This document shows positions 12,801-51,877 of a stretch of DNA of 64,000 nucleotides, piece by piece. The notes beneath the pieces are model-generated. The model did not search any database. It was not told the DNA's origin and saw only the letters and a list, made by a program, of their open reading frames with translations. This DNA is from Macrostomum lignano. Lineage: Eukaryota. The stretch spans positions 124,001 to 188,000 of the forward strand of contig NIVC01002115.1 in the NCBI GenBank assembly GCA_002269645.1, given 5' to 3'. The first letter of the stretch is position 1, and every line of letters starts with the position of its first letter. Position numbers and translations under genes: made by a program.

Positions 12801-14519
12801 AACTACGCAACAGCCTACTCAACAAAAACCCTCTTAAAAACAACCCACTCTGAAGCGAACCCCTTAGCAACAAACCACTCACCACCTACGAGCGTAGCAA
12901 CAACCCTACGAGAAACAGCATCACACAGCCTATTTCATTTAGCACTGAGCCGCCAACAGCCGCAGTCCCATCCCAAAGCACTCACGGAGCCGACTGAATC
13001 CTCTTGATCCGGCTGAGTTTCTCTCGCCTACCCTCGACCAGCGAAGCCGCAGTCTCGCACCTGTACGCCTCCCAGGTGCGCACAGCCGATCGACGTTGGC
13101 GTAGTTGAGCATCAGTTGGCACGGTGCCAGCGTGTTCTCGTACGAGTCTGCTCAGATTCTGGCGACCCAGAACGGTGAGCTGGTTGCGGTGCAGCCGGTA
13201 GACGGTGACGTGAGATTTTGTGCACACAGACAGGCTCGACTCGCAGCCTTGCAGAGGGCTTTCCTCTCCGAACATGTCGCCTGAAGTTTCAGGTAATGCA
13301 GAAATTTAAAAGCAAACTCCAAAGCAGGGGGGACGGCAAATTCCGTCCAAGGAAGACTCTCTATCCGACCCTCAGGTCCTTTGGAACTTCACAATAGCAA
13401 TCTGGCCCACTTGATGTATACATGTGTATCTCTTCTCAGCGCCCTCCCTCTCAATTCTCTCTAATCTCCTCTCATGATTCACATAGGATGTACACGAGTC
13501 CTATTTGAGTCATGCATCCTATGTTGCATCCTATGTGGACTGCCACTTTGATTAGCAAGCTAACAAACAAACAAACGAATAGTTCTTCAGAACCCAGTCT
13601 CACCTTTGTCAAAAGTACTCAGAGCAAACGCTTCGGTCTTCTCTTGGCCGTCCTCCTGAAAGCTCAACATCCGGTACGCTTGACACCTGCCGGAGGTGAG
13701 AAAGTACAACCAGTCGTTACGCTCGCCCTGTTTCAGCACCAGCGAGTCGGGACGCAGGTTCTCCTTCACCAGATGGGGCACCAGGGCCTCTTTCTCCGAC
13801 ACTGGCAACTGGCTGAGAAAATTCCACTCGGCATTGAGGAAATCGATTGTTTCGTTACGCAGTTGCGCCTCGATGTTGCGCATCAGGGCGTGGAACTTGG
13901 CCCGATCGACGCGCAGCAGCTCGCAATCGGTCTTACAGTACAGCGTCGCCGGCGGTGCCAAATCGCCTTGGTCCTCGTCGCCGTGGCTGAGCAGGCCGAG
14001 GTACTCGCCCATGCCGTGAGTGTACACGATGTTGGGCTGGAACATCTGCTGCGACACCGTCGCTCTGTTGTCGTCGTCAGCAGGTGCCGCTGGCTCGTAC
14101 GTGGCCTCGAGGCTGCCGTGCAGGATGTAGTAACAGGAGAACTGCTCCTCGTGCGGTCGCTTCTGCAAGTAGTCGAACGCTTTGTACACCCCATGCGTCA
14201 GACAGTTGGCGATGGCCAGTTTCACGTGACTCCTGCCCCGGTGAATCAGGCGCAAGCTGTCAATAATATTTTTCAGTACTAGACGTTCGGAGTCGCTCAA
14301 GTGGAATTTGTGCTCCCGTTCCAGCTGCTCGTTTCGCTTCATCACTCGCGCGGCTGTGGCCGTGATAGCAATGCTGCCGACGCCGAAGATTCGTCGGTTG
14401 AAGATCGGCGGCCCCTGACTGTCGCGACCGCCGCTGCGCTGTTTCTCCTCTTCGCGCGCTTTCGCCGTGGCCTCAATGAACGACTTGCGCTCGTTGAGGC
14501 GCTGGAGCAGGCCGAGCAT
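3856..14519 (-). CDS. Protein with two degenerate cyclic-nucleotide-binding (CNB) domains, CNBD1/CNBD2-like, about 740 aa. Exons: 14519-13604, 13280-12986, 12173-12085, 11993-11839, 11472-11341, 9758-9616, 9015-8781, 4113-3856
   Basis: The exon 1-2 junction rebuilds the CNB motif LVLKQGERNDWLYFLTSG...FDK|GDMFGEE. An upstream repeat reads YYILHGSLE...GMGEYLG...CKTDCELLRVDR. All seven introns are GT-AG and phase-compatible; the exons sum to 2223 nt = 741 codons. Exons 3-8 rest on splice/phase logic only, and further 5' exons are possible. Confidence 0.75.
4418..8743. repeat. 22-23-bp G-rich minisatellite (GATTCCTGAGGAGTGTTGGGGG[C/T]), about 190 copies, filling intron 7 of the CNB-domain gene
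   Basis: Unit read directly; a GATTAATGAGGAGTGTTTGGGG variant is interspersed every 4-17 units (mostly 6-10). Confidence 0.98.
9059..9475. repeat. 21-bp minisatellite (TCCAATGTAAACTACCCCGTA), about 20 copies, in intron 6
   Basis: Unit read directly; it explains the repetitive ORFs 9038..9526 and 9110..9559. Confidence 0.97.
9852..9925 (+). mobile_element. tRNA-derived Pol III head (SINE head or tRNA pseudogene)
   Basis: GGGGCCGTAGCCCAGCGGTAG (A-box-like) and GGCTCGATTCC at 9902-9912 (B-box-like) at tRNA spacing. Acceptor and anticodon stems pair poorly, so not a functional tRNA. Confidence 0.5.
9936..10827. mobile_element. Non-autonomous hAT-type DNA transposon (MITE), 892 bp
   Basis: TIRs CAGTGTTAGGCACC / GGTGCCCAACACTG (13/14 match). 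Exact 8-bp TSD AATTTGGG at 9928-9935 and 10828-10835. Subterminal regions are packed with GTTAA/TTAAC motifs. No ORF. Confidence 0.9.
10870..11260 (-). mobile_element. tRNA-derived SINE with CORE/V-SINE-like central motif
   Basis: Minus strand begins GGGTTGTAGCCTAGTGGTTA (A box), then GGTTCGATTCT (B box), then GTGTCTTTGAGCAAGACACTTAACT, which resembles the conserved central box of CORE/V-type SINEs. 3' end approximate. Confidence 0.7.
11535..11815. repeat. Degenerate 12-bp repeat (GAGTTCATGAGT), about 22 copies, in intron 4
   Basis: TCATGAG recurs at about 12-bp period. Confidence 0.9.
12300..12780. repeat. 17-bp minisatellite (CCCAATCTCAGCAACTA), about 27 copies, in intron 2
   Basis: Unit read directly; it explains ORF 12201..12788. 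Confidence 0.95.
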
Positions 14520-16864
14520 GCTTATAGAGAGAGACGCTACCTCAGTGACATGACAGTCGCAGCGACAGGCATGTTAGCGATAGCGATCTTTACAGTCAGT
14601 GAATGGGGACGAGAACAGGTGCTATAAAGGGGAGCAGGTGGGGTTAGGGCTTCCCTAGCTACTGCAGACTACCTGTTCCCCAAGCTGCTAACTCTTTTTC
14701 CCTATCATCGATTTCAACAAGCAACGCGATAGGCCCGCCAATGGTGGTTCATTCTTGCAGGCGGGCAGGCAATGCGTTGTATAATCCCTCCGCGTGCCAT
14801 TCAGCATTTCCATGTTTCCTTCATCTCGCTCCCGCATCCATCTCTTGCCTAAAGCTCTGCCTCCCGCCCCCGTCTTCAGCTCCTATGCTCCCCATTCCCC
14901 TCATTACCAGTATAGACTTGCAACAGAAGCCGGGAGAAACAGAGAGAGGGAGAGAGACAGAGAGAAAAGATCCTGCATTTTGGGTCGCGGGCACGCGTGC
15001 TCAGGGGGAGTTGGCTGTGGGTCCCTGCAGCAACTCCAAAATAGCCTCTCATACCGGACAGCGACCGCGCGTGGAGTGAGGGGGGGAATTGTGCGCGACT
15101 GCAGAGTGCGGCAATAATCTTGAGCACTTGTTGTCATTAGCGACCGTATTGAATTGTTTTTGTGTTTCCTTCTGCGAGGAGGCAAAAATAGACAGGGGAA
15201 AGAGAGCTAGGAGAAAAAACTGTCTGTACCAATACTGACTGACTAGTAGCTGTCCAATTCACAATGCCCTGCATGCATTTTTCACTTCTAATTTCCTGCA
15301 ACTCAAAATTTGACAATCCCCACGAAACTTGCTGCATGCTACTTAAGTAAAAACGTTTTTGTTGGTTTTGACGTCTACGAGTACATGTAATTAAATTTCG
15401 CGTCTATGAATACAAAGAAATACCAGTTAGTATACGAGTGAAATTGTGACAGCAGTGCCTCAGATGACTTATTCTGATTTTTATCAATGACAAATCTATA
15501 GGCTTGCATTCACGCAGGATGCGGACAGCCAAAAACTGAAAAGCAAACTATAGATCACAATCTCAACGCAATCCTCAAGTCGACAGCTGGCGTCTCGATC
15601 AGCAATTGCAGGCAGTCGACGAAAAGTCCTCGCCGATAGTCATCAGCAGCATCTGAAGTGACCGCGATGGTGCAACAGATGGTGACAGATTGCTTGGATT
15701 GATAGAGTCCTTACATGTCCTCTGCAGCAAGTTACAAACCCATGAATTTGTGCGCAAGAGCCAAAATGAATTGCGCTTCGATCGTGATTACATATTTCTA
15801 AACGCAATACCGATCAGACATTGCGCCTGCGTCATCAGCACTAAAAATGTTAAAAGTACATTCATACTGTTATACATACCCCTACCCTACACAGGCGCCA
15901 TGTTCTAGTGCATGTATAACCTTAGTCATCATCTGTATATCCTGCATCTTCAAATAATCTTCAAAAGTCCCCAAAAATTAGGGAAAATTGTGTCTTATAC
16001 CTATGTATCTTAGAGGGAAACCTTTCCGAATCTGCTCAAACGATTACGTCATCCGTTTTTTGTAGTGGGTTTTGCACCATCGTTGGAAGCTCAACTGATG
16101 TGATTGCGTGTTTCCCTCAGATTTTGTAATACTGCGAGGGCACCCCTTGCACAACGCCTTCGGTAAGACATGTACACTCTCTGTGCCTTGGGGGGGGGGG
16201 GGTGGCCCTCATGGCTTTGAATTCCACGACAAATCCCCGAATAATATAAAATTACGCTCGTAAATGCTGACAAATTTCTGACAAAGTTATCCGGCCAGTT
16301 GTGTAACATACATGCATACATTTTTTTATTTTGGCCGAAAGTACGAGACAAGCTCAGCAAGTCGTGCGGCACCCGCTGCCCGCTCAGTTACTACTGTTTA
16401 TTTCTTATCCTTGTTCTGAGGTTCTAAAATCACTACACGGATTATATTAGTCAATCAAAAAAGACAGATCAGATTTGAAAAAAATTACAACTATCAAGGA
16501 AAAAGGTTCATTGAAATAGGTCGCAGATAGCGCTACCAGACGCGTGTAAAAAACTGTGGAGGAACTGACATCCGAATGCAGAGATGTATTTACAGATTAA
16601 CCACCAGTAAAAAAAATCATAATAGTTTATATAATTAAACAATAAAATTATAAACTCGATTACTAATCAATCAAAATTCAACAAGAAAAAGTTGATTGAT
16701 TAGTAATTATAGTAAAGTTATACGGCCAAAAATATTAGAAATAATGCTACTGCAGTACTGCCTAATAAAATAGACCCTAATAAAGTAGACTTGTCATTCA
16801 TACGCGGCAGTAGGTACAAAATGAACGGACAATAAACCATACTGCAAACTACTGATATAATTCT

Positions 16865-18664: not shown

Positions 18665-19072
18665 NNNNNNNNNNNNNNNNNNNNNNNNNNNNNNNNNNNN
18701 NNNNNNNNNNNNNNNNNNNNNNNNNNNNNNNNNNNNNNNNNNNNNNNNNNNNNNNNNNNNNNNNNNNNNNNNNNNNNNNNNNNNNNNNNNNNNNNNNNNN
18801 NNNNNNNNNNNNNNNNNNNNNNNNNNNNNNNNNNNNNNNNNNNNNNNNNNNNNNNNNNNNNNNNNNNNNNNNNNNNNNNNNNNNNNNNNNNNNNNNNNNN
18901 NNNNNNNNNNNNNNNNNNNNNNNNNNNNNNNNNNNNNNNNNNNNNNNNNNNNNNNNNNNNNNNNNNNNNNNNNNNNNNNNNNNNNNNNNNNNNNNNNNNN
19001 NNNNNNNNNNNNNNNNNNNNNNNNNNNNNNNNNNNNNNNNNNNNNNNNNNNNNNNNNNNNNNNNNNNNNNNN
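18665..19072. other. Assembly gap (408 N)
   Basis: Run of N; ORFs spanning it are artefacts. Confidence 1.
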
Positions 19073-20576: not shown

Positions 20577-21783
20577 CGGGTCTATGAAATTTGCTTGCGA
20601 GAAGTTTGCTTGCGAAGTTTGCTTGCGGGACTTTTGCTTGCGGAAATTTGCTTGCCGAAGTCTGCTTGCCGAAGTTTGCTTGCGGGACTTTTGCTTGCGG
20701 AAATTTGCTTGCCGAAGTCTGCTTGCCGAACTTTGCTTGCGGAATTTTGCCTGCCGAAGTTTGCTTGCCGAGCTTTGCTTGCCGAACTTTGCTTGCCGAA
20801 TTTTGCTTGCAGGAAATTTGCTTGCTGCACATAAGCTTGCCGAAGTTTGCTTGCAGGAAATTTGCTTGCCGAACTTTGCTTGCAGGAAATTTTCTTGCGA
20901 GGTTTGCCAGCCAATTTTTTGCGGAACCTTAAAGAAACCTATTTTTGAGCTCTTGTATTTCTAATTTTCATTTTCTAAGATTCGTGGAAGTCGCCTATAG
21001 TGTTATGATTTTGTATGAGGATATGGCGGATTATTAACTAAATTTTATATACTAAAATATTATTAGTATATGCATATTACATTAGCATCACTGCAATTAT
21101 CATACCTGCTCAATCGTGCTGAAATCAGGAACTACAAATATTTATACTGTTACCGATCCCTATCTACCTATACTAAATCTCTAAGCATTCTATATACTAC
21201 ATTCTTAGAATGAAACTCTATAAGCCTAGTTTGAAAGCTTAGTGTCAAGTCAGTTTACGTCGACCCTGATAAGAATCCACTTGCAAAGCATGCATCTGTA
21301 GTAAGTAATAATTGACTGACCAACTTTACAAGCAATCAAAACAAGCAAGCAAACAAGAAAATAATTCTGCAAGTTAAAACCTTGCGATTGTGTGATTGCA
21401 AATTTCTAGAAAGCAGACATCAAAATTTCGCAAGCAAAGTTCGGCAAGCAAAATTCCTGCAAGCAAAGCTCGGCAAGCAAACTTCGGCAGGCAAAGTTCC
21501 TGCAAGCAAATTTCCTGCAAGCAATTAAAGTTCGGCAAGCAAAGTTCGGCAAGCAAACTTCAGCAAGCAAAATTCCGCAAGCAAAGTTCGGCAAGCAAAG
21601 TTCGGCAGGCAAAATTCCGCAAGCAAACTTCGGCAAGCAAAGTTCGGCAAGCAAAGTTCGGCAAGCAAAGTTCGGCAAGCAAAATTCCGCAAGCAAAGCT
21701 CGGCAAGCAAAGTTCGGCAAGCAAAATTCCTGCAAGCAAAGTTCGGCAAGCAAACTTCCCGCAAGCAAACGTCGTACTCCCGG
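20577..21783. mobile_element. Foldback-like element, about 1.2 kb: two oppositely oriented arrays of a 15-bp unit (AAGTTTGCTTGCCGA) around a ~500-bp AT-rich core
   Basis: Array 20588-20910 reads TTTGCTTGCCGA and array 21412-21770 reads TCGGCAAGCAAA. Both outer ends share CGGG-N2-TAYGA-N2-TTTGCTTGC in inverted orientation. Confidence 0.75.
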
Positions 21784-23049: not shown

Positions 23050-24938
23050 CGGGTTCGTCTGAGAAAACTATATCCGACGTCGCCGAAAAACCTTTATACG
23101 CGACAGTCCAGCAGTTGTGCTTGCAAAATATGTGAGACTGCCCGGTTCAACCCGATTGGGAAAGGACTGGGAACATGGAAACCAGAGCCACATTCGCTTG
23201 GACGACCCGCGTGTTCGGATCCAGATCATGGTCTGCCACCGGCACAACCTGTTGTCATCTGCCAGCGCTGCCACTCAATGGTTGGCAGAGGTTTGCCTCA
23301 CTACTGCACGCAAACACAGCGACGAGAAAATCTATTCAGTAAGTTGTCGCTAGACCGTCGAGGTGCCGAAATCCACGCAAGTGACGTGATCAAAGCTAAG
23401 GCTGCTTCCACCGGCTCAAACTCTAGATTTCAATTGGCAACTAGAGGTCGTGATCTTACAGTGTGTGTTGGGCAACGGGCTGGTAGTTCTACATCAATGA
23501 GAGGTGGCTGCGCCGTACCAGCAGAGGAATTCAGCCGATTCCAGCAGACGCTGTGTTTGAGCGGTCGGCAAACTAAGTTGGCCGCCCAATTTTTTCGAGC
23601 ATGGAAAGGACGCAAGAGCATTGAGCCAAATTTGCGCAGCAAACTGAGCGCCATCGACTCTGCTCTAGACGATTTGTTTGAGTTGACTAACCTAGAGATG
23701 GACTGTGCCAAAGGAAAAAGGGAAATGCGCAGCATTGTATTCTGCACTGATCCTCTGGCTCTGATTGACAGAGTGATGGCACGTCGTCAGGTCAGTGCAG
23801 ATGACGGCGCATTGATTAAAGTTGGCATCGACAGTGGAGGCGGCTTCTTGAAGTTTTGTGTTAGCATTGTGCCTGCTCAAGGTTTAAAAGATCAACCTAC
23901 CGGAAGTCGCAGCACGTACGCAGAAGGCGCATGCCGTTTCCATTTTGAGGATGGAGGAGTCCGTAAACTGCTCCTGCTTGCCATTGCCGAATCTGTTTCC
24001 GAGTCCTACGATAATCTGCAGCAGATCCTGAATCTTCTTAATTTGCAAGGATTTTCATTCTGTGCAGCAGTTGATATGAAAATTTCGAATGCGATCCTGG
24101 GACTTCAGTGCTGCAGCAGCACCCATCCCTGCCCTTGGTGCGAGACTGCCAGGATCGATTTTTCTAATCCAGACCGCACGAACGTGTTGAGATCGATCGG
24201 CGGTATTCGGCTACAGGCATTTGAGTACCAGCGCACTGTAGAAGAAAAAGCGCCGCGCAACGTGTCTGCTGCTGCTTTCAAAACTGTGTGCGTCCTCCTC
24301 TGCTCGAAGTTCCAGACAGCACGATGGTGCTCCAGGCCATTCCACCAATGGGGCTGCATCTCTTGCTTGGCGTGACCAATCGACTATTCGAAGAACTGGA
24401 CACTCAACTGCGAGGACTCGAAGACTGTCAGATAAGCACCGATGACTGGCTACAGCAGCTTGGCCTTCGACGACCATTGCAGAACGGTGGGAACTTTGCC
24501 GGAAACGCCTGCGAGTGTCTTCTAAATGGCGTCGACATTTTGATTGCAATGCTGGCTCAGCACAATGTGTTTTCGGCAATGCCTGTAGCTCACGCCCTAC
24601 GCTGCTTCCGCGATGTGAAGGCCTCGTGCTTTGGTATGAGTGTGTGTGGAGACTTTGAGAATCGAGTCCGGGCATTCGAACAAGCCTATATCGATCTTGG
24701 AATCCGCGTCACCCCGAAAGTCCACGCTGTTATTGACCACGTTGTCCAGTTTTTGAACATGTCCAATCTAGCTGGAGAACCCAAGAAGGGACTTGGCTTC
24801 TGGTCTGAGCAGGTGGTTGAGACTGCACACCACGATTTCAGCAGCATGTGGCAAGACTTTCGGATCGATTTTCATCATCCATCGTATCCAGATCGACTGC
24901 ACAAGTGTGTTGTTGCATACTGCTCTCGTCATGCCTAA
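23050..24938 (+). mobile_element. Chapaev-like (CMC/Transib/RAG1 clan) DDE transposase, about 630 aa, with one frameshift at the A-run 24280-24283
   Basis: N-terminal CACKIC (CxCxxC) and CQRC...GRGLPHYC zinc motifs. Core motifs: KVGIDSGGG (D), AVDMK (D), HPCPWC, PPMGLHLLLG, FAGN, KVHAVIDH (HxxxxH) and WSEQVVETAHHDF (E). Adding one A at TTCAAAACTGTG joins ORFs 23278..24375 and 24288..24938 as FKNCVRPPL. Confidence 0.85.
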
Positions 24939-26503
24939 ACAAAATGTGAACTAGCTAAATCAATCAAGACTGCGAATTAGGATTATACATTTCTCTTTAT
25001 TGGGATGAACAAATAGTTCTTAGTCAGACCCTGTAGACTGGAAAGCGAAATTAAACAGAACATAAACAGGAAGTAAATAATTGGAATCTTTCAAAAAGCG
25101 TGTTATCTTACCCATTCAACCCACCGAAATACAATGTCCGCATTTCAAAATTCCATTCCAGCTTTGCAATGCATGCATAGAGATTGTTAGTTCACTAGAA
25201 AATGAAATCTAAAACAGACTAGATGATCGCTAGCTATTGTCTTATCCCGATAGGACCCTAAAGTTATTTTTTCTTTTATTTATTTTTGAATTAATGATAG
25301 GAATACATTAGGTAGCTGGTGGAAACCTTAATTTAATTCTTTCTACGAGCGTATGGTAAACTTATATCGCAGAAGTCCTTGTTCTTACCCATCATCATGG
25401 AAAGGGAATAGCTTCCTTTGAAAACTCAGCAGAATTTAATAGAAGGATATGCCTATGGTTCCAAGGGCCAAAATGGCATGAATACGAGAGCTGTGCAGCA
25501 AATTTACAGGCTCACAGCCAATGAGATGGTAGCTACGTATGAGGAGGGAATAATAGCTACAACTCAAAAGCAAGCGATAGAAAAATATCTGGGATAATAT
25601 GCCCTCCATGCCTTGCATCACTCACGCACAATTTTGCGCAATGCTTCTTTGTCCACTTTTATGTAGCATTCTCTGTACTGTACGAGTGTTTATGCTGTTT
25701 TTTGTTACATTTAGTCACAATTATTCATTGATGTTTCAATTTATACTTTATACTTTGGACTTTGTAAGGTGATGGCATACCTATGAATTATAATGAAAAG
25801 TTTCTGACTTGTTTTAAGATCATTTTTTCAAATTTCACAAACTCATGTAGACACTCATTTTTTGCATCACGCATATTGAAAACCAATAGTAATTAGGTCA
25901 TATGGTAATAAAGTGCTGTAAATCAGAGATAGCTCGGGAGATTTTTTTGAAATTGCACATATGTTGTGCTAAGGTCCAGATGAGTGTGTAAATTATTGTC
26001 ATTTCAGGCTGACTTTATTTTCACCTTTAAAGGGCTTTAAGACATGTGTGGAATAAGCTGTTCAGTCGCGACTAGTGAAGACCTCTATCCAGCCTGGGAA
26101 TGCGTCTAAAACTATTTAAGTACTTAAAGTTTACTAAAACTACTTAAAGTTTCCTTTTAAGTTTTTCCGAGCCGAGTCAGCCAATCTCGATAATTATCAC
26201 ACGACAAGAAGTCATCTTTTTTCTGGACATCCCACAGCTGAGATCAATAAAAAACGATCCTCGAACTGAGAACTCCACAGTCCCAGTGACGCGTCACGGG
26301 TCTTCTAGAAGATGTTTGCACCATTTGCCTTCGCTAAGCATTCCCTTTAGGATGTGATATTTTTAAGTTACTTTTATTTATCAACTTCTCGTTGCGTTCT
26401 TTCGAATGTAGTTATTGTTCTCGTGGCTTTTAATGAAATCTTTCGTTGCCGTTGAATTCCGCTTTAGTCATAGTTTCCACCCCAACCTTATCAAAGTTCC
26501 GTT

Positions 26504-26818
26504 CTAATCATTAGGTTCCGCTCCAATCATAGGTTCCTCTCTAATCATAGGTTCCGCTCTAATCATAGGTTCCACTCTAATCATAGGTTCCAATCTAATC
26601 ATAGGTTCCAATCTAATCATAGGTTCCGCTCTAATCATAGGTTCCGCTCCAATCATAGGTTCCGCTCCAATCATAGGTTCCGCTCTAATCATAGGTTCGG
26701 CTCCAATCATAGGTTCCAATCTAATCATAGGTTCCACTCTAATCATAGGTTCCAATCTAATCATAGGTTCCAATCTAATCATAGGTTCCGCTCCAATCAT
26801 AGGTTCCGCTCTAATCAT
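26504..26818. repeat. 18-bp minisatellite (TCTAATCATAGGTTCCGC), about 17 copies, left arm
   Basis: Unit read directly; it gives the AEPMIR pseudo-ORF. Confidence 0.95.
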
Positions 26819-27261
26819 TGTGCTAAACTATACGCTCCGCTCTAATGTTTCGGTCATTTAAGTGCTCAAATACTCGTATACCGTAATAAAACATTCAAGG
26901 TACCATAAAACTTACTATGCGTCACCAGCATAGAATTCAGGGTGGTAAATAAACTGCACCTTTATAAAAATTAATGGTGCGTCAGTATCCAAAAGTCGCA
27001 ACATAAGCGCATCGGCCTTGCTATTGCACAGAAACCCGTTAACAGCGGAAGAACCCGTAAAGTTAACCAAAGCAGCAGAGCACAAAAGCATGGCAGCGTC
27101 AGTAATACGATTTCTTACTCAATGAAATCAATCGCTAACAAGATAAACAATGAGGCTTTTTGAGAAACATACACAATCACCAAAATGTGTATAAAACCGT
27201 GTAAACACGGGAGCCGTAACGTGAAGTCATAAGTTAAAGAACACTTTACTAGTCAACAGAA

Positions 27262-28500
27262 ATGAATACTTTTAAATACGTTGGAGATCCTTTGGGTGAG
27301 TATTTTTCAAAGCTTATTGAATTACATGCAGTTAGTTTAAAACAGTTTCCTTTTTATTATTGTAGGGCACAGGACCCATCTGCAGCAAAACTTCAACCGA
27401 ACCCTTTCTGAAGAATATTTAACAAAAAGATACAATTTACTTGTTCAGTCATACTGGAATGCCTTTATGAAATTTGGAGTAGGAATTTCCAAGGCCATCG
27501 GCTTCCCAACAGGCCTGCTGCTGCAGATCCTCACCGTCATTTTCCTGGTTCGCGGAAACACCGGCTTCTCTCTGTCAGCCAGGAAGTGGTTTCTCCTAGT
27601 CGTCAGTGCGGACATTGCGGGCACCTTGTACCGCGCATACGAAATGATCACTGATGATTTTTTTAATTCCAATCCCTACGCTAGTTATGGACCCGGAAAC
27701 GATCTGCAGTTTCTGATGTGGGGCCTGCGTCTAAAGACCACAGATTCCTCCAGAATGTAATGTGCAGAGTATTCTTCATCATCCTCTACTTCCCGCTGTA
27801 CCTGTCTCCGTTCGCTCTGACCATCAGCTCGCTACTGCGCTGCTACTGCATCAAGTATCCGCTGGTTGCCAAGGCCCACCTGACCAAGAGACTCGACCTG
27901 ATCTTGATTCTTGCGGCTTCGCTGCTTGCTCTGGTTGTGGCGGTCGTGTTCGGCGCTCTGATTATAGACGGCTGGAGTTTGACGTTGTTTTCCACGACAA
28001 TATACGGCATCCATGTTTACTATGGGAAATGCAGCGTTCCGGCCTTTCAGGTTATTAACACTGATAAGGAACTGCAGTTCATTGGCTTTGTTTTCATGCT
28101 AGTAGTGGCATTCTTCATATGCTTTCTGAACATGCTGTCTGCCACTATCATAATCATAGTGCTGTTTCAGTCGAAAAGGAATAGAGCTGTGCTGTCAATG
28201 AGTGGCAATGAAGGAGCTGACGCAGTGAACATGGAGGCTCGAGCCACCGCCAGGCTGCTGGGGATGAACGTCACGCTGTTGTTGTGTTTCTTCTTCTCCC
28301 GACTGCTGCTGGTGGTCAGCACGAGGATTGACAATTATGTGGATCCGATTTCTTGTGTGTTTGTAGACTTCTGCTGTTTTGTTTTATCTAGCACTACTCT
28401 ATTTAATTCGTTTGAAATAAACCTTTTTCAGATGTGGTCTCTGATCGACTGGCGGCTATGCTGTTCCACATTCCGTACTTTACTAACTCGCTGTTCATAG
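27262..28500 (+). pseudogene. Rhodopsin-family (class A, peptide-receptor-like) GPCR with a frameshift. Exons 27262-27295 and 27366-28500
   Basis: ATG exon, 70-nt GT-AG intron and an N-terminus with an NRT sequon. Hydrophobic TM segments, TM3 Cys (SRMCRVFF) and a DRY-position motif (LLRCYCIKYPL). An AATGT tandem duplication at 27754-27763 creates a frameshift and TAA. Confidence 0.8.
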
Positions 28501-29153
28501 CCGGTCTGTCCAGAAGCTTTTACCAGTTTCTGTTTCCCTGCATCGGAGACTCGAAGCCGAAGCTGTCTTCCTCCGATAGTCAGAGGACTTTTTGATTGAA
28601 TCAACATATTTCGAATGTAAGAACTCAGTGACAGTGGAGCAACTCTTAGTTGTGAAGTAAAGCAGAATAGATTGACCTTTTTGGGCATACAGAATATCTG
28701 CCTAAATAAAATATTACCGACTGACATTCTCGCTATTAATTAAGCAGGCAATAAACTTTTAATGTAGGTAAATTATTTTTTTAGCAAACATGGATGAAAA
28801 ATGTGAGCATAAACATAGATATACATGTACACAACAACTTCATGGTTCAAAGTTCAATTAACAGGAAATCATACTCAATAATGCAGGCACCTATAGACGG
28901 TGCAAGTCTGTTCTCATTGTCTCTGTGTTAATTTTAGACCCTAATTTAGAGTTGGCTCTTACGAAAAATTATCGTAGAAAATGCAATGACTTGAAACGAA
29001 GTCTTTGATTATGCACTGGAAACTGGCTTTCAAGAGGCAGACAGACAGAGATGTATCCATATTATAGGGCTCCGGTTTTACTATATATTTGTGGGCTCCT
29101 CCCACATTTGCCAGGCAAATTGTGGCACGAAACACGAAAGATAAGTACCGATG

Positions 29154-30339
29154 GTGCATTACATAGCATGGGGTCCGACTATTCAGAGGGGGTGACTACG
29201 GTGAGTCAGGAAAAGACAGTGTCGTAGTCAGTGGGAGCAGTTGACCCTGACCAGACTGTGGAGGGATCAGCCCAGACCATCACATCTCCCCTGAGGCTGG
29301 AGGCTGGAGTCAAAGTCGGTCCGGTGGTGCACGGGTGTGCTGGGGATATCGCTGGGCCGATGAATCCACTTCTAGTGCCAGGATGCCGCCGGCAGCCGAA
29401 TGTTCATCGTCAGAGTCGTCCTGCTGCTGGGCCGTTGGTGGGGGCGTGGCGGCAGCGGCAGCGGCAGGCAGGCGCGGCGGTGTGTCGGTGCCGCGGTCTG
29501 GCAGCGACAGTAGTTGATCAGTGTGACGCTGCATGAGAGGGCTGTCTGTGCTCACAGTGCAGTTTCAGGGCCCCGCCCGAAAATTTGACGGTGCCTTCTT
29601 GCCAACGGTTTCTAGTGGTAGTGCTGTAGTCTCGCAACAAAACTCGGTCTTCCGGTCGGAACGTCCTGGCTTGCCTGGGTGACTGTTGAAGCGCTGACTG
29701 CTGCTGCTGGTGCCGGTTGCTGACGAGTGAGGGCGTTAGCAGATCGAGCCGGGATCAAATCGGCGCCCGAAGAGCAGCTGGCTGGGAGCCGAGCCCGAGG
29801 CTGAATGTGGCGTGTTGCGATAGGTGAGCAGGAACTGCTGCAAAGCTTTCTCGGGCGGTCCCGATTTCTTCAGGTGCTGTTTCAACACTCACGAACCGTT
29901 CAGCTTGTCCCTTTGTCGCCGGTTGGAAATAGCGCTAAAGTCACGTGCTCGACACCGTTGATCCTCAAGAACTCGGTGAATTCCGATGACGCAAACTGGG
30001 CTCCGTTGTCCGACACCAGAGTCTGCGGCAGGCCCCTGGCGCGCAAAAAAAGCTTGCAAAGAAGCTGATTGTCTAGGCCGACCTCATGCTGGTCAGCTGC
30101 TTCACCTCCGGCCACTTGCTATGCGCGTCGATAAGCACTAGAAAAGTGCGTCAGTTCACTGGCCCAGAAAATTCGACACGCAGTCTTGACCACGGCTCCG
30201 ATGGGAAGGACAATGGGTGCTTTGGCGCTTTGGGCGGATCAGCCTGGTTGAGCCGGCAGGTTTCACATGCCTTGACGGAGTTCTCTACGAGCGCTTTCAT
30301 GTGGCTAGCACCAGGAAGATCTTGATGCTGTGCCCTCGT
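29154..30339 (-). mobile_element. Degenerate Ty3/Gypsy 3' end (integrase, PPT, LTR start), left-arm copy
   Basis: Mirror image of 31260-32445. Confidence 0.85.
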
Positions 30340-30344
30340 CTTTT

Positions 30345-30943
30345 TGCATTTTAGGGAGACCCTAGTGTTCCTAGCGATCCTTTCTCATGGCGTTGAGCTT
30401 GGCCATCATGATGCCAGCAATCTTGGAAAAGTGCGGTTTAAAGTTAAGTTCCTTACTAGAGTGACACCTAGGAGGCCGCAGGGTCGTAGTATTGAATTTC
30501 ATCCTGACAAAGTTTACGTAAGGATTGGCTTTTCGTGATGTGGTTGCCATTAAACTTAAAGAAGGAAACTGCCTTGCTTTTGATGGTGCTGCCAACGTCG
30601 CCCAGCAATTTTTTTAAGGTGCCAAAGTAGCTGTTAAGCCCCTTCGCAGACATGCTGGACTTTCTGGCGCTGGCCCAGTCAGCAAGGTGGTCAGCAAATT
30701 GGCTAATATTAACCCGGTTGTCCAGCAGTCTGGGAATGGAGCTGACATTTACTATGAAAAAAAGAGGCGAAAGCACCCCAACCTTGAGGAGACGCCAGCA
30801 GCAAGATCAAAGCCCTCGCTGACGGCACACCCACCTGGATTTTAATCTCCCTGCAATCATGATCCTTACCATGTTGTGAGGAACCTCATACTCAAAGAAC
30901 CTTTGTCTAAGATAACTATGCCAGACCCCGTCGAAAGCTCCCT
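30345..30943 (-). mobile_element. Degenerate non-LTR (LINE) reverse transcriptase fragment
   Basis: Minus-strand frames give GAFDGVWH, GVSSRLGVLSPLFFIVNV, QFADHL and LGVTL..KELNFKPH, matching the RT motifs AFDxVxH, GVPQGSVLSP, (Y/F)ADD and YLGV. Confidence 0.8.
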
Positions 30944-31255
30944 GCTTCAAATTATGAACTAGCTTCTCTATTCGCGTCTGCTTTGACGTCAAGGGAGCTT
31001 TCGTTGGCAGCACCATCAAAAGCAAGGCAGTTTCCTTCTTTAAGTTTAATGGCAACCACATCACGAAAAGCCAATCCTTACGTAAACTTTGTCAGGATGA
31101 AATTCAATACTACGACCCTGCGGCCTCCTAGGTGTCACTCTAGTAAGGAACTTAACTTTAAACCGCACTTTTCCAAGATTGCTGGCATCATGATGGCCAA
31201 GCTCAACGCCATGAGAAAGGATCGCTAGGAACACTAGGGTCTCCCTAAAATGCAA
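30944..31255 (+). mobile_element. Plus-strand copy of the same LINE fragment, carrying the native RT motif VCFDVKGAF and a 336-bp internal deletion
   Basis: GTC TGC TTT GAC GTC AAG GGA GCT TTC G (about 30976-31003) is joined directly to TTGGCAGCACC, which lies 336 nt further along in the left-arm copy. Confidence 0.75.
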
Positions 31256-31259
31256 AAAG

Positions 31260-32445
31260 ACGAGGGCACAGCATCAAGATCTTCCTGGTGCTAGCCACAT
31301 GAAAGCGCTCGTAGAGAACTCCGTCAAGGCATGTGAAACCTGCCGGCTCAACCAGGCTGATCCGCCCAAAGCGCCAAAGCACCCATTGTCCTTCCCATCG
31401 GAGCCGTGGTCAAGACTGCGTGTCGAATTTTCTGGGCCAGTGAACTGACGCACTTTTCTAGTGCTTATCGACGCGCATAGCAAGTGGCCGGAGGTGAAGC
31501 AGCTGACCAGCATGAGGTCGGCCTAGACAATCAGCTTCTTTGCAAGCTTTTTTTGCGCGCCAGGGGCCTGCCGCAGACTCTGGTGTCGGACAACGGAGCC
31601 CAGTTTGCGTCATCGGAATTCACCGAGTTCTTGAGGATCAACGGTGTCGAGCACGTGACTTTAGCGCTATTTCCAACCGGCGACAAAGGGACAAGCTGAA
31701 CGGTTCGTGAGTGTTGAAACAGCACCTGAAGAAATCGGGACCGCCCGAGAAAGCTTTGCAGCAGTTCCTGCTCACCTATCGCAACACGCCACATTCAGCC
31801 TCGGGCTCGGCTCCCAGCCAGCTGCTCTTCGGGCGCCGATTTGATCCCGGCTCGATCTGCTAACGCCCTCACTCGTCAGCAACCGGCACCAGCAGCAGCA
31901 GTCAGCGCTTCAACAGTCACCCAGGCAAGCCAGGACGTTCCGACCGGAAGACCGAGTTTTGTTGCGAGACTACAGCACTACCACTAGAAACCGTTGGCAA
32001 GAAGGCACCGTCAAATTTTCGGGCGGGGCCCTGAAACTGCACTGTGAGCACAGACAGCCCTCTCATGCAGCGTCACACTGATCAACTACTGTCGCTGCCA
32101 GACCGCGGCACCGACACACCGCCGCGCCTGCCTGCCGCTGCCGCTGCCGCCACGCCCCCACCAACGGCCCAGCAGCAGGACGACTCTGACGATGAACATT
32201 CGGCTGCCGGCGGCATCCTGGCACTAGAAGTGGATTCATCGGCCCAGCGATATCCCCAGCACACCCGTGCACCACCGGACCGACTTTGACTCCAGCCTCC
32301 AGCCTCAGGGGAGATGTGATGGTCTGGGCTGATCCCTCCACAGTCTGGTCAGGGTCAACTGCTCCCACTGACTACGACACTGTCTTTTCCTGACTCACCG
32401 TAGTCACCCCCTCTGAATAGTCGGACCCCATGCTATGTAATGCAC
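31260..32445 (+). mobile_element. Degenerate Ty3/Gypsy 3' end: integrase, PPT and start of the 3' LTR, right-arm copy
   Basis: Frames give CETC...PWSRL, LVLIDAHSKWPEV, GLPQTLVSDNGAQFASSEF, FLLTYRNTPHSASGSAPSQLLFGRR and a C-terminal RYPQHTRAPPDRL-stop. PPT AGGGGAGA at 32307-32314 is followed by TGT at 32315. Multiple stops and frameshifts; LTR end uncertain. Confidence 0.85.
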
Positions 32446-33098
32446 CATCGGTACTTATCTTTCGTGTTTCGTGCCACAATTTGCCTGGCAAATGTGGGAG
32501 GAGCCCACAAATATATAGTAAAACCGGAGCCCTATAATATGGATACATCTCTGTCTGTCTGCCTCTTGAAAGCCAGTTTCCAGTGCATAATCAAAGACTT
32601 CGTTTCAAGTCATTGCATTTTCTACGATTATTTTTCGTAAGAGCCAACTCTAAATTAGGGTCTAAAATTAACACAGAGACAATGAGAACAGACTTGCACC
32701 GTCTATAGGTGCCTGCATTATTGAGTATGATTTCCTGTTAATTGAACTTTGAACCATGAAGTTGTTGTGTACATGTATATCTATGTTTATGCTCACATTT
32801 TTCATCCATGTTTGCTAAAAAAATAATTTACCTACATTAAAAGTTTATTGCCTGCTTAATTAATAGCGAGAATGTCAGTCGGTAATATTTTATTTAGGCA
32901 GATATTCTGTATGCCCAAAAAGGTCAATCTATTCTGCTTTACTTCACAACTAAGAGTTGCTCCACTGTCACTGAGTTCTTACATTCGAAATATGTTGATT
33001 CAATCAAAAAGTCCTCTGACTATCGGAGGAAGACAGCTTCGGCTTCGAGTCTCCGATGCAGGGAAACAGAAACTGGTAAAAGCTTCTGGACAGACCGG

Positions 33099-34337
33099 CT
33101 ATGAACAGCGAGTTAGTAAAGTACGGAATGTGGAACAGCATAGCCGCCAGTCGATCAGAGACCACATCTGAAAAAGGTTTATTTCAAACGAATTAAATAG
33201 AGTAGTGCTAGATAAAACAAAACAGCAGAAGTCTACAAACACACAAGAAATCGGATCCACATAATTGTCAATCCTCGTGCTGACCACCAGCAGCAGTCGG
33301 GAGAAGAAGAAACACAACAACAGCGTGACGTTCATCCCCAGCAGCCTGGCGGTGGCTCGAGCCTCCATGTTCACTGCGTCAGCTCCTTCATTGCCACTCA
33401 TTGACAGCACAGCTCTATTCCTTTTCGACTGAAACAGCACTATGATTATGATAGTGGCAGACAGCATGTTCAGAAAGCATATGAAGAATGCCACTACTAG
33501 CATGAAAACAAAGCCAATGAACTGCAGTTCCTTATCAGTGTTAATAACCTGAAAGGCCGGAACGCTGCATTTCCCATAGTAAACATGGATGCCGTATATT
33601 GTCGTGGAAAACAACGTCAAACTCCAGCCGTCTATAATCAGAGCGCCGAACACGACCGCCACAACCAGAGCAAGCAGCGAAGCCGCAAGAATCAAGATCA
33701 GGTCGAGTCTCTTGGTCAGGTGGGCCTTGGCAACCAGCGGATACTTGATGCAGTAGCAGCGCAGTAGCGAGCTGATGGTCAGAGCGAACGGAGACAGGTA
33801 CAGCGGGAAGTAGAGGATGATGAAGAATACTCTGCACATTACATTCTGGAGGAATCTGTGGTCTTTAGACGCAGGCCCCACATCAGAAACTGCAGATCGT
33901 TTCCGGGTCCATAACTAGCGTAGGGATTGGAATTAAAAAAATCATCAGTGATCATTTCGTATGCGCGGTACAAGGTGCCCGCAATGTCCGCACTGACGAC
34001 TAGGAGAAACCACTTCCTGGCTGACAGAGAGAAGCCGGTGTTTCCGCGAACCAGGAAAATGACGGTGAGGATCTGCAGCAGCAGGCCTGTTGGGAAGCCG
34101 ATGGCCTTGGAAATTCCTACTCCAAATTTCATAAAGGCATTCCAGTATGACTGAACAAGTAAATTGTATCTTTTTGTTAAATATTCTTCAGAAAGGGTTC
34201 GGTTGAAGTTTTGCTGCAGATGGGTCCTGTGCCCTACAATAATAAAAAGGAAACTGTTTTAAACTAACTGCATGTAATTCAATAAGCTTTGAAAAATACT
34301 CACCCAAAGGATCTCCAACGTATTTAAAAGTATTCAT
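33099..34337 (-). pseudogene. Second copy of the GPCR pseudogene. Exons 34337-34304 and 34233-33099
   Basis: Mirror of 27262-28500; ORF translations are identical, including the 5-bp duplication. Confidence 0.8.
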
Positions 34338-34780
34338 TTCTGTTGACTAGTAAAGTGTTCTTTAACTTATGACTTCACGTTACGGCTCCCGTGTTTACAC
34401 GGTTTTATACACATTTTGGTGATTGTGTATGTTTCTCAAAAAGCCTCATTGTTTATCTTGTTAGCGATTGATTTCATTGAGTAAGAAATCGTATTACTGA
34501 CGCTGCCATGCTTTTGTGCTCTGCTGCTTTGGTTAACTTTACGGGTTCTTCCGCTGTTAACGGGTTTCTGTGCAATAGCAAGGCCGATGCGCTTATGTTG
34601 CGACTTTTGGATACTGACGCACCATTAATTTTTATAAAGGTGCAGTTTATTTACCACCCTGAATTCTATGCTGGTGGCGCATAGTAAGTTTTATGGTACC
34701 TTGAATGTTTTATTACGGTATACGAGTATTTGAGCACTTAAATGACCGAAACATTAGAGCGGAGCGTATAGTTTAGCACA

Positions 34781-35239
34781 ATGATTAGAGCGGAACCTAT
34801 GATTAGAGCGGAACCTATGATTAGATTGGAACCTATGATTAGATTGGAACCTATGATTAGAGTGGAACCTATGATTAGATTGGAACCTATGATTGGAGCC
34901 GAACCTATGATTAGAGCGGAACCTATGATTGGAGCGGAACCTATGATTAGATTGGAACCTATGATTAGATTGGAACCTATGATTAGAGCGGAACCTATGA
35001 TTAGAGAGGAACCTATGATTGGAGCGGAACCTATGATTAGAGCGGAACCTATGATTGGAGCGGAACCTATGATTAGATTGGAACCTATGATTAGATTGGA
35101 ACCTATGATTAGATTGGAACCTATGATTAGAGAGGAACCTATGATTGGAGCGGAACCTATGATTGGAGAGGAACCTATGATTAGAGCGGAACCTATGATT
35201 AGAGAGGAACCTATGATTGGAGCGGAACCTAATGATTAG
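34781..35239. repeat. 18-bp minisatellite, about 25 copies, right arm (8 more units than the left arm)
   Basis: Reverse complement of the 26504-26818 unit; 144 bp longer. Confidence 0.95.
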
Positions 35240-35694
35240 AACGGAACTTTGATAAGGTTGGGGTGGAAACTATGACTAAAGCGGAATTCAACGGCAACGA
35301 AAGATTTCATTAAAAGCCACGAGAACAATAACTACATTCGCAAGAACGCAACGAGAAGTTGATAAATAAAAGTAACTTAAAAATATCACATCCTAAAGGG
35401 AATGCTTAGCGAAGGCAAATGGTGCAAACATCTTCTAAAAGACCCGTGACGCGTCACTGGGGCTGTGGAGTTCTCAGTTCGAGGATCGTTTTTTATTGAT
35501 CTCAGCTGTGGGATGTCCAGAAAAAAGATGACTTCTTGTCGTGTGATAATTATCGAGATTGGCTGACTCGGCTCGGAAGAACTTAAAAGGAAACTTTAAG
35601 TAGTTTTAGTAAACTTTAAGTACTTAAATAGTTTTAGACGCATTCCCAGGCTGGATAGAGGTCTTCACTAGTCGCGACTGAACAGCTTATATTC

Positions 35695-36240
35695 TGTCAT
35701 TCGGTGCCTCACAACCGTATTCACACGTTTCGGGGTCAAGAGGTCGTCGTATCAGACAATGCGCTCGAGTTTACTATAGAGAGTCGCCCACCTCATGGTT
35801 GCGCATCAATGGTGCACGCGAGTTGGCATCACCGGCATACTACTCGCAAGCAAAAGTGGCAGCTGAAAGAATGTGCTCTGCATCATCGAATCTCTGCTTC
35901 GTCCTGAGAAGGCTGTCGCTCCAAAATAAATTTTGGAAGACGATTAAGTGTCCCGGTTGTGTCACAATTTGAGCAGGGTGACATCGTCATCTACACGCCA
36001 AACAGTTCTGCCGTCAGCAATCCAGCATCTTTCGTCATGACGGCCGGCCGCAATTTGTGTGAATTCTGACTGAGGAGAATTAACCTTCCTTTCCCCATCA
36101 CGAACCAAATTACCCCACGAGCCTCCCAATCGCCAGAAGTTACGTCGGAAGATGGGGAGAACCAGCGCCCTCTGGTCAACAGGGAGGATCAACCCTGCTC
36201 CTGAGGTCGGGACCCGGAAGAGGATATGCTCTTGTGAAGA
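35695..36240 (+). mobile_element. Second, more degraded Gypsy integrase remnant
   Basis: Shifting frames give VFTRFG..EVVVSDNALEF and SWLRINGARELASPAYYSQAKVAAERM, matching the integrase core. End approximate. Confidence 0.6.
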
Positions 36241-41260: not shown

Positions 41261-41873
41261 TACTCAGCAACAGCTAAACCCCCCCCAACTCACGCTGTCA
41301 CACGGGCACAAAAGTTAAGCAATGTCTTTAATTCCAGTCTCAGTATCGTGTGTAGGAACCACGAGCATGCAAAAGTGCCGTGACTCGTCGTGGCATCCTG
41401 ATCACCAGCCGGTTGATGAACTCTTGGGGCAGCTGCTGCCAGGCATTCAGCACCGCCAGTCGCAACTGTTCAGCATTCTGTGGGGCATCCTGCTGAACTC
41501 TTCGCTTTACAAAGTCCCAGACATGCTCGATAGGGTTCATGTCTGGAGACTTTGACGGCCAGTTCAATGTGCGAATGCCGAGCTGCTCCTTCAGCAGCTG
41601 CACGTGTGCTGCTCGATGTGGCGCAGCGTTGTCGTCTTGAAGCATGCAGTTCTGCGGGCCGCCAAAGGTTGTCGTAGCAAATGGCAGAAACTTTGCAGCA
41701 ATGCAGCCACCAGTGGGTTGAGTTGCGCCACACCCTCCCCAAATCCCCCATGCCGCACTTTGCGCTCGCGTCTGGCGGCGGCAGCCTTCACACATTTCTG
41801 AGTCACCGATGGCATACAAAACTTTTAGGCCGTGTGACAGCGTGAGTGGGGGGTTTTTAGCTGTTGCTGAGTA
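41261..41873 (-). mobile_element. Internally deleted Tc1-family element (about 610 bp) with both TIRs and the C-terminal DD34E region
   Basis: About 55-bp TIRs TACTCAGCAACAGCTAAA...ACTCACGCTGTCACACGG...AAAAGTT, with TA on both sides. ORF 41340..41819 contains QDDNAAPH...WPSKSPDMNPIEHVW, with D-to-E spacing of 34. Confidence 0.92.
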
Positions 41874-42373
41874 TATTAAGAAATCGCCTACTGAAAACTA
41901 GCAAGCAATTGTAATTAATGTGAATCTAATGCTTGTATAATAAGCCTGCGCATTGATACATGTACATGTATAGTTAAATAGAACTGCGAAAACGTGTCCT
42001 ATATACGTCTACAATACATTACGTTTGGAGGCAGAGTTTTTCGTGTGATCGCACGGCTCGTACACATTTTAGTCGCTTTATTTGTACATCAGTTTGTGTG
42101 ATTCGATGACTTCATTGGTGGGTACTATGAACGAGACTTCAAGAGCTAAGAGGCAAAAACGTACATAAGTGCGGTGATGGAGTCAAATGCAGATGTATTT
42201 ACTCAATAATGGACTGAATAGCTTTCTTATAGAAATACGGCAATCTGTTTGATTTTTTTACAACCAGTATGGCGTGGTATCGACATAGAAGTGCATGTAC
42301 ATTAACAGCCTTTGACGCCATGCACTTCTCTCAGTGGATTTACTGAGGATTAGGAGGTGATCTATACTTAGTC

Positions 42374-50829: not shown

Positions 50830-50972
50830 AGATCCCCATTCACCCTGCTTCCCCCTCCATCAGATCCCCATTCTCCCTGCATCCCCCTCCATCAGATCCC
50901 CATTCTCCCTGCATCCCCCTCCATCAGATCCCCATTCTCCCTGCATCCCCTTCCATCAGATCCCATTCTCCC
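50830..50972. repeat. 32-bp tandem repeat, about 4.5 copies
   Basis: CAGATCCCC recurs at 50861, 50893 and 50925. Confidence 0.88.
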
Positions 50973-51092
50973 TCATGCTCACCATCTCCTACTTGTGATT
51001 GGCTGCTGGCATTCACGCACACCTATATTTCACTCGAGCATTATGTGCATTGTAAAATTCAGAAGCAAAAATACGGATTGGATTTAATCTAA

Positions 51093-51777
51093 AAGGCGCC
51101 AAGCACCAGGGGTGCCAAGCACCAGGGGCGCCAAGCACCAGGGGCGCCAAGCACCAGGGGCGCCAAGCACCAGGGGCGCCAAGCACCAGGGGCGCCAAGC
51201 ACCAGGGGCGCCAAGCACCAGGGGCGCCAAGCACCAGGGGCGCCAAGCACCAGGGGCGCCAAGCACCAGGGGCGCCAAGCACCAGGGGCGCCAAGCACCA
51301 GGGGCGCCAAGCACCAGGGGCGCCAAGCACCAGGGGCGCCAAGCACCAGGGGCGCCAAGCACCAGGGGCGCCAAGCACCAGGGGCGCCAAGCACCAGGGG
51401 CGCCAAGCACCAGGGGCGCCAAGCACCAGGGGCGCCAAGCACCAGGGGCGCCAAGCACCAGGGGCGCCAAGCACCAGGGGCGCCAAGCACCAGGGGCGCC
51501 AAGCACCAGGGGCGCCAAGCACCAGGGGCGCCAAGCACCAGGGGCGCCAAGCACCAGGGGCGCCAAGCACCAGGGGCGCCAAGCACCAGGGGCGCCAAGC
51601 ACCAGGGGCGCCAAGCACCAGGGGCGCCAAGCACCAGGGGCGCCAAGCACCAGGGGCGCCAAGCACCAGGGGCGCCAAGCACCAGGGGCGCCAAGCACCA
51701 GGGGCGCCAAGCACCAGGGGCGCCAAGCACCAGGGGCGCCAAGCTCCAGGGGCGCCAAGCACCAGGGGCGCCAAGCC
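51093..51777. repeat. Near-perfect 16-bp minisatellite (CAAGCACCAGGGGCGC), about 42 copies
   Basis: Unit read directly, with only a few variant units at the ends. It explains the repetitive ORFs between 51013 and 51835. Confidence 0.98.
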
Positions 51778-51877
51778 AATTAACTTTTAGAGAAGCTACT
51801 GTTCGGAGTTGCATGTATCTTTGAAAATCATCCAAATAAATCTACAGGCTGAATACAGTTCTGTCTCTCTCAGCTCA

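Follow-up and report, generated by a model that had tools for sequence, protein, structure and literature searches.

Does the long inverted repeat present on contig NIVC01002115.1 of the flatworm Macrostomum lignano belong to the animal, or was it created during sequencing and assembly, and, if the animal carries it, how did it arise and does it have any function? We addressed these questions in a stretch of 64,000 nt of this contig (GenBank assembly GCA_002269645.1, positions 124,001 to 188,000 of the forward strand), hereafter called the window, within which all positions are counted. Near its middle, two arms face each other across a short spacer, each carrying a copy of a rhodopsin-like seven-transmembrane (7TM) gene of the G-protein-coupled receptor (GPCR) type together with transposon remains. 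Judging from the assembled sequence, we put at roughly 70% the probability that this is a genuine inverted duplication in cis in M. lignano, and we infer that the animal carries the inverted-repeat structure. It would most likely represent a recent inverted segmental duplication of transposon-rich intergenic DNA.

When we combined an inverted-repeat search with self-BLAST of the window, the arm pair was recovered as its sole long inverted repeat, with coordinates and lengths (4545 and 4689 bp) exactly as given in the original prediction that had drawn attention to the locus. Similarity between the arms ends sharply at all four edges, and as a feature of the assembled sequence the structure is real, far beyond chance. 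The prediction had described it as a near-perfect palindrome. The arms are indeed inverted copies of each other, but the whole is not a true palindrome, as the spacer of 404 nt is itself non-palindromic and occurs only once in the window. The instability that was attributed to the locus on the grounds of its being a palindrome has to be qualified in the same way, since it applies mainly to palindromes lacking a spacer and is reduced by a spacer of 404 nt. From the outside to the inside, each arm is made up of a unique stretch of 443 bp, an 18-mer satellite, the 7TM gene, a decayed integrase and the edge of a reverse transcriptase (RT) fragment. The arm contents had thus been described correctly in outline, except that the fragment of a long interspersed nuclear element (LINE), which had been placed within the arms, lies almost wholly in the spacer. 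The two GPCR copies aim at the axis, as had been proposed, and are convergent. In the outer stretch of 443 bp we found no open reading frame (ORF), Rfam family or tRNA, and neither an Rfam family nor a tRNA was found in the whole region 19073-42000; likewise, no long terminal repeat (LTR) pair or other dispersed repeat bounding the arms was found in the window. We also considered that the arms could be the inner part of a longer palindrome or be bordered by homeologous flanks, with inverted homology resuming outside the arms. This was rejected, the flanks being without inverted similarity at a word size of 11.

Part of the evidence for a genuine duplication comes from the differences between the arms, which we compared ungapped on each side of the satellite. 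In the outer 443 bp the arms differ by four substitutions (at 26164, 26281, 26305 and 26402; 0.9%, 95% confidence interval 0.25-2.3%), while over the inner 3779 bp they differ at 26922 and 28970 only (two substitutions, 0.05%; 99.95% identity). Two further substitutions lie within the satellite (26575 and 26794), which brings the total to eight, with no 1-bp indel at all. The divergence is therefore uneven along the arms (4/443 in the outer part against 2/3779 in the inner part, Fisher p = 0.0015). The satellite arrays, whose unit order we wrote with one letter per 18-mer variant, differ as well. The right array is longer by 144 bp, which corresponds to 8 units, and the two arrays have their ends in common while the middle is rearranged, so that they differ in unit order and not in length alone. 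The original prediction had counted at least six substitutions and 8 satellite units between the arms, a count that holds with the eight substitutions and 8 units found here.

These differences bear directly on the simplest artefact, a fold-back read in which one molecule was read along both of its strands. Eight substitutions and a rearranged satellite order indicate that the arms are not complementary strands of one molecule. In technical fold-back reads the gap is below 200 bp, the symmetry is about the midpoint of the read, and support from other reads is mostly lacking (PMC12870357). No SMRTbell adapter 12-mer was found in the spacer, and the flanks are unique and mutually unrelated, the right one over 28 kb and the left one over the roughly 7 kb that precede an N gap. 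The claim that this is a real duplication rather than a fold-back read is thus favoured by the arm differences, the asymmetric and adapter-free centre and the unrelated flanks.

The same comparison weakens a second possibility, raised along with the original prediction, namely that two allelic haplotypes were joined head-to-head by the assembler. Neither flank is an inverted copy of the other, and the inner 3.8 kb are too similar. In the inbred DV1 line, three subgenome variants (S, L1 and L2) occur with a single-nucleotide polymorphism divergence of 1.4-2.4%, while heterozygosity inside any one of them is negligible (PMC10733133). In this inbred line, two alleles of one subgenome should be identical, which argues against head-to-head haplotypes. 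At the divergence that separates subgenomes, 53-91 differences would be expected in the inner 3.8 kb, where we observed 2 (Poisson p < 1e-19), a value about 30-fold too low. The divergence of the outer segment, for its part, fits the lower subgenome estimates, with p = 0.26 at 1.39%, going down to 0.02 at 2.41%.

Table 1. Coordinates of the inverted repeat and of the features inside it (positions in the window)
Feature	Position	Strand	Remarks
Left arm	26053-30597 (4545 nt)	.	Repeats 31002-35690 in inverted orientation; edges sharp (26052|26053, 30597|30598)
Right arm	31002-35690 (4689 nt)	.	Inverted copy of 26053-30597
Spacer	30598-31001 (404 nt)	-	Single-copy, non-palindromic; LINE-type reverse transcriptase fragment; in-frame stop 30807-30809
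Outer unique segment, left arm	26053-26495 (443 nt)		Partner 35248-35690; 4 substitutions (0.9%)
18-nt satellite, left array	26496-26818	.	17.9 copies; unit-variant order ABCDEFFDBBDGFEFFBH
18-nt satellite, right array	34781-35247	.	25.9 copies; unit-variant order ABCDJBCFFFBDBCDFFBDGFEFFDH
7TM gene, left copy	27386-28595	+	Intron of ~79 nt near 28354-28432; stop codon 28593-28595; no Met at the start of homologue P0006
7TM gene, right copy	33004-34213	-	Sequence identical to left copy, frameshift included; convergent
-1 frameshift, extracellular loop 1	27728-27747	+	20 nt against 7 codons in homologues; identical mirror site 33852-33871
Pair of poly(A) signals, AATAAA	28705, 28750 (28705-28755)	+	110 and 155 nt past the stop codon; mirror 32844-32894 on -
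Decayed LTR-retrotransposon integrase	29521-30384	-	Stops 30151-30153 and 30073-30075; ~4 frame changes; mirror 31215-32078 on +
Innermost left arm	30471-30597	-	Spacer RT frame open for 42 codons; motif-6-like GSTIKSKAVSF, spaced from FADH as expected

The gene carried by both arms matches the Pfam family 7tm_1 with an E-value of 3e-5 and 23.7-24.2 bits, which is under the curated cut-off of 30.5. Seven hydrophobic segments, the cysteines of transmembrane segment (TM) 3 and extracellular loop 2, and an NSLFI motif in TM7 are readable in the sequence, and the M. lignano homologues of the gene are named G_PROTEIN_RECEP_F1_2 domain proteins in UniProt. When 1.84 billion representative proteins were searched exhaustively with HMMER, only 7 relatives were returned, all of them from M. 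lignano, which indicates that the family is lineage-restricted (Macrostomum-restricted). The UniProt protein A0A1I8HTC4 of M. lignano (P0001) is the same as the 7TM frame of the window except for three residues at the gene-model splice, and it confirms the intron close to the 3' end. When we searched the window by tblastn with the full-length paralogues P0006 and P0003, the frame was found to switch between ...LMWGL (to 27727) and LQNVMC... (from 27748), the site of the frameshift being probably the A-run at 27733-27735. A 35-nt GT..AG intron (27709-27743) that could have repaired the frame was rejected, as it would delete the LMWGL conserved in P0006 and P0003 and is also contradicted by the homologues, which show a 1-nt deficit in the window copy.

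There is not a single difference between the arms in the 7TM coding sequence, and a frameshift that is identical in both copies is what would be predicted either by duplication after the mutation or by conversion between the arms. The GPCR pair would thus consist either of very young pseudogenes or of copies in which one and the same assembly indel was left uncorrected. In UniProt, the model P0001 begins just past the frameshift, a start that fits the two cases alike. Paralogues elsewhere in the genome are 87-100% identical to the gene over parts of their length (P0002 and P0004). In the gene model of P0002 (A0A1I8J461), a stretch that matches TM6 of the window GPCR at 100% identity is joined to two exons of a paralogue, its exon 1 and its last one, which points to another M. 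lignano locus where a tandem paralogue, in direct orientation, comes after a GPCR copy.

Closer to the axis, fragments of the integrase match the Pfam families rve (E 6e-7) and H2C2 (E 0.03). Once joined, the integrase translation found proteins of many animals named 'K02A2.6-like' or 'Gypsy retrotransposon integrase-like' (E 1.4e-55, 36-51% identity), and we assign it to the Ty3/Gypsy type, a superfamily that is taken from the homologue names alone. An ORF at the start of the right flank (35659-35904) was considered as a second integrase and rejected, having no Pfam match and an E-value of 1.3 in a BLASTP comparison with the integrase P0013.

The spacer offers a clue as to which of the junctions are old. 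The RT fragment matches RVT_1 with an E-value of 1.9e-6 (3.6e-6 for the spacer alone, over profile positions 77-156), and its translation reads with the LINE-like motifs LSPLFF and FADH. No homologue of the fragment was found among 5.8 billion proteins, and a search of the PDB gave a chance match only. Starting from the spacer, the RT frame runs on without a stop for 42 codons in the left arm as against 21 codons in the right arm. The RVT_1 score, which is 27.3 bits for the spacer alone, becomes 28.5 when the left arm is added and 26.8 when the right arm is added, and the left arm extends the match to profile position 187. These values weakly suggest that the left arm joined to the spacer is the older configuration, the newly formed junctions being 31001|31002 and 35690|35691.

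An inverted segmental duplication could have arisen here as follows. A stretch of 4.5 kb would have been copied in reverse orientation, 404 bp past its own inner end, most likely through a fold-back or template switch where a break or a stalled fork had occurred within the LINE RT fragment. The fold-back loop would have become the spacer, and the far end of the new copy would have been joined to unrelated DNA at 35690|35691. The right flank, from 35691 onwards, is related neither to the spacer nor to the left flank. Alternatively, the same product could have come from a replicative template switch in two steps. On the derived sequence, the 3' terminus of the spacer and its reverse-complemented 5' end share 0 bp of microhomology, where a real one would be counted as arm.

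The arms would subsequently have followed different courses along their length. The long uninterrupted inner 3.8 kb have probably been kept near-identical by arm-to-arm gene conversion, while the outer 443 bp, lying between the limit of homology and the length-variable satellite, may have largely escaped conversion and drifted to about 0.9%, and the satellite arrays may have been altered by slippage. Short homology blocks tend to escape gene conversion. The uneven divergence (0.9% in the outer part and 0.05% in the inner part) is suggestive of gene conversion and fits it, and a polishing artefact or chance could also have produced it.

The satellite arrays also call to mind a Foldback-like or composite transposon, in which the whole 9.6-kb unit would be one mobile element with very long terminal inverted repeats, in which tandem repeats occur close to the ends as they do in Foldback elements, and with captured host and transposon fragments. 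A tandem-repeat array does lie 443 bp in from the outer end of each arm, and its repeat number differs between the arms, as is the case for the arms of Foldback elements; a small, Foldback-like inverted pair of 14-mer arrays (20586-21769) is located 4.3 kb to the left. However, no target-site duplication of 3-12 bp was found at 26052 and 35691, no second copy of the unit was found within the window, and the element would be without a transposase. Its arms, moreover, consist mostly of ordinary genomic debris (gene, integrase and RT) and not of repeats. We therefore give almost no credence to such a transposon. The 14-nt repeat arrays themselves (20586-20899 and 21430-21769) are inverted, 82-92% complementary over at most 169 nt and about 530 nt apart, and they constitute the sole other inverted pair in the window.

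A genuine inverted duplication has to be weighed most carefully against a misassembly, in which two or more separate near-identical copies of the 4.5-kb stretch would exist, carried for example by different subgenomes (S, L1 or L2) or dispersed as paralogues, and one would have been joined in reverse to another at 31001|31002. A chimeric or mis-overlapped read could have served as the join, in which case the right arm, and the right flank with it, would be part of a different locus. Several points speak for caution and weigh against a duplication in the animal. The case is built on the assembled sequence itself. The published M. lignano assembly Mlig_3_7, of which the window would be a part, was obtained from PacBio reads with Canu 1.4, polished with Pilon and scaffolded with SSPACE (PMC5730564). 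It is a draft assembly of a polyploid genome with documented chimerism and internal errors: REAPR detected 872 fragment-coverage errors inside its contigs (PMC5730564), and scaffolds chimeric between subgenomes account for 36% of the assembly length (PMC10733133). A gap of 408 N is present in this same window (18665-19072); its odd length is what a mate-pair scaffolder, for instance SSPACE, would leave, and it points to a scaffolded draft. Polishing with multi-mapping short reads could have homogenised the inner arms, junction microhomology can be scored only with the unduplicated ancestral sequence, and the evidence for the ancestral junction amounts to +1.2 bits. A misassembly is also in keeping with the existence of at least one more locus in which a 100%-identical GPCR stretch is followed by a tandem paralogue (P0002), and with an outer 443-bp divergence compatible with the lower published subgenome estimates.

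Other observations are difficult to reconcile with such a join. A misjoin induced by a repeat yields the order A-R-D, and not an inverted R-spacer-R', so that an inverted junction read would still be required. A random ligation chimera of two points lying 404 bp apart in opposite orientation is improbable, and the overlap-based trimming carried out by Canu normally removes ligation chimeras. The centre is asymmetric and without an adapter, and for two subgenome copies the inner 3.8 kb are, as seen above, about 30 times too similar. Taken with the points in its favour, we consider a misassembly unlikely, though still to be reckoned with. Independent contigs were also looked for. An exact-protein look-up of P0001 gave no M. 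lignano contig for the locus, and a 33-mer spanning the junction was absent from metagenome contigs, from which a control 33-mer taken from the arm was absent too, so that this null result is uninformative.

If the inverted duplication is genuine, a transcript that begins at one GPCR copy, or upstream of it, and passes through the axis would fold into about 4.5 kb of double-stranded RNA, and small interfering RNAs of endogenous origin (endo-siRNAs) or PIWI-interacting RNAs (piRNAs) processed from it could silence the GPCR paralogues and the Gypsy and LINE families. In silico, 299/300 arm bases were paired in a construct of 300+404+300 nt, at -731.8 kcal/mol. Potential targets would be available among the paralogues that are 87-100% identical over parts (P0002 and P0004), and the gene copies are frameshifted, as expected of a non-coding derivative. 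The piRNA pathway of M. lignano is active, with unidirectional and bidirectional clusters (PMC4604429), and in Drosophila simulans the inverted repeats that give rise to hairpin RNAs (hpRNAs) have homology to young gene families and to transposons (PMC10317233). However, what supports a functional hairpin-RNA locus here is its geometry alone, and transcription would have to read through the two AATAAA signals plus about 2.3 kb of transposon debris before reaching the axis. The small RNAs reported from M. lignano are microRNAs of 22 nt and piRNAs of 28-32 nt, with no endo-siRNA class, and the 436 piRNA clusters represent 0.63% of the genome (PMC4604429). The Drosophila examples, for their part, have far shorter homologies (e.g. 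about 200 bp) that lie inside defined transcription units (PMC10317233).

In view of these points, we hold it to be very improbable that the locus functions as a source of hairpin RNA. A still slimmer prospect is that the inverted duplication is transcribed across its loop and gives rise to small RNAs by which the intact paralogues, as well as the co-duplicated families of Gypsy and LINE elements, are regulated. In that case it would be the first flatworm hairpin-RNA locus, comparable to the origin of Drosophila hpRNAs from the genes that they target; to our knowledge, flatworms are not known to have endogenous loci of hairpin siRNAs. The structure is best read as neutral debris that would be hairpin-capable, incidentally, if it were transcribed.

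The remainder of the window contains many minisatellites. Very large ones are located at 2569-3600 (unit of 22 nt), 4282-8770 (23 nt), 12191-12887 (17 nt), 50951-51790 (16 nt) and 63259-64000 (23 nt). The 16-mer array is near-perfect over about 52 copies, and a 23-mer array of about 4.4 kb gives long spurious ORFs. To the left of the duplication, two overlapping open frames on the plus strand (23050-24372, 441 aa, and 24225-24935, 237 aa) have a CPWC motif and no Pfam domain; they may encode an uncharacterised transposon protein with one frameshift. Exons of ordinary host genes, distant from the duplication, encode a cyclic-nucleotide-binding domain (13590-14573, minus strand), calmodulin-like EF-hands (51791-53284, plus strand) and a FERM domain of the ERM type (60780-61941, plus strand). 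The other transposon remnants, found at 41343-41897 and 55242-55691, both on the minus strand, are pieces of a Tc1/mariner-type DDE_3 transposase and of an RNase H.

In comparison with what had been noted previously, the shared frameshift, the AATAAA signals, the graded divergence, the rearranged satellite order and the location of the RT in the spacer are new. If the structure is real, it adds another small spacer-containing inverted duplication, that is, the outcome of an ordinary recent event, and with its divergence gradient from the outer to the inner part it could offer a compact case in which to test arm-to-arm conversion in a neopolyploid flatworm. The locus would also be one where gene annotation, with its truncated GPCR model and doubled copies, and short-read mapping are unreliable. 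As an artefact, it would instead point to a misjoin in a draft assembly that is widely used. The regulatory-RNA reading, if true, would matter more.

Among the systems to which the locus can be compared are the hpRNA loci of Drosophila (PMC10317233) and the pseudogene-derived endo-siRNA hairpins of mouse oocytes, the latter reportedly described by Tam and by Watanabe in 2008. Shared features are a young, lineage-restricted gene duplicated in inverted orientation together with transposon fragments, paralogues elsewhere that could serve as targets and a near-perfect complementarity of the arms. The arms here are, however, several-fold longer than the homologies described in Drosophila (PMC10317233), and poly(A) signals are positioned between each gene and the axis. 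Fold-back and missed-adapter artefacts are alike in that the sequence returns onto the opposite strand near the turning point. They differ from the present structure in that its gap is of 404 nt and not of less than 200, its centre is adapter-free, its arms are unequal and have both sequence and satellite differences, and it is bordered by long unique flanks where an artefact would have the end of a read (PMC12870357).

The order of the parts, an arm, a single-copy spacer, the inverted arm and then unrelated DNA, is that of human constitutional fold-back inverted duplications (PMC3907307). In these, a single-copy spacer of 766-70,466 bp, the hallmark of a fold-back origin, was present at 21/21 sequenced junctions, with inverted microhomology of 2-8 bp in 13 of them and interspersed repeats (LINE or short interspersed nuclear elements) in 3/21 (PMC3907307); the spacer described here also lies inside a LINE fragment. 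The M. lignano structure differs by its arms of 4.5 kb, as against megabases, by a spacer of 404 bp that falls under the human range, and by being fixed, or old enough for substitutions to have occurred. As for the ampliconic palindromes of sex chromosomes, the arms of those on the human Y are more than 99.9% identical as a result of arm-to-arm conversion (PMC3723533, PMC8600007), and a deletion found on both arms of one of them was ascribed to arm-to-arm conversion or to a double crossover (PMC8600007). The locus resembles these palindromes in having a unique spacer, an inner identity of 99.95%, a lesion on both arms and a lineage-specific gene, whereas it is about 10 to 300 times smaller and its gene copies are broken rather than preserved (PMC3723533, PMC8600007).

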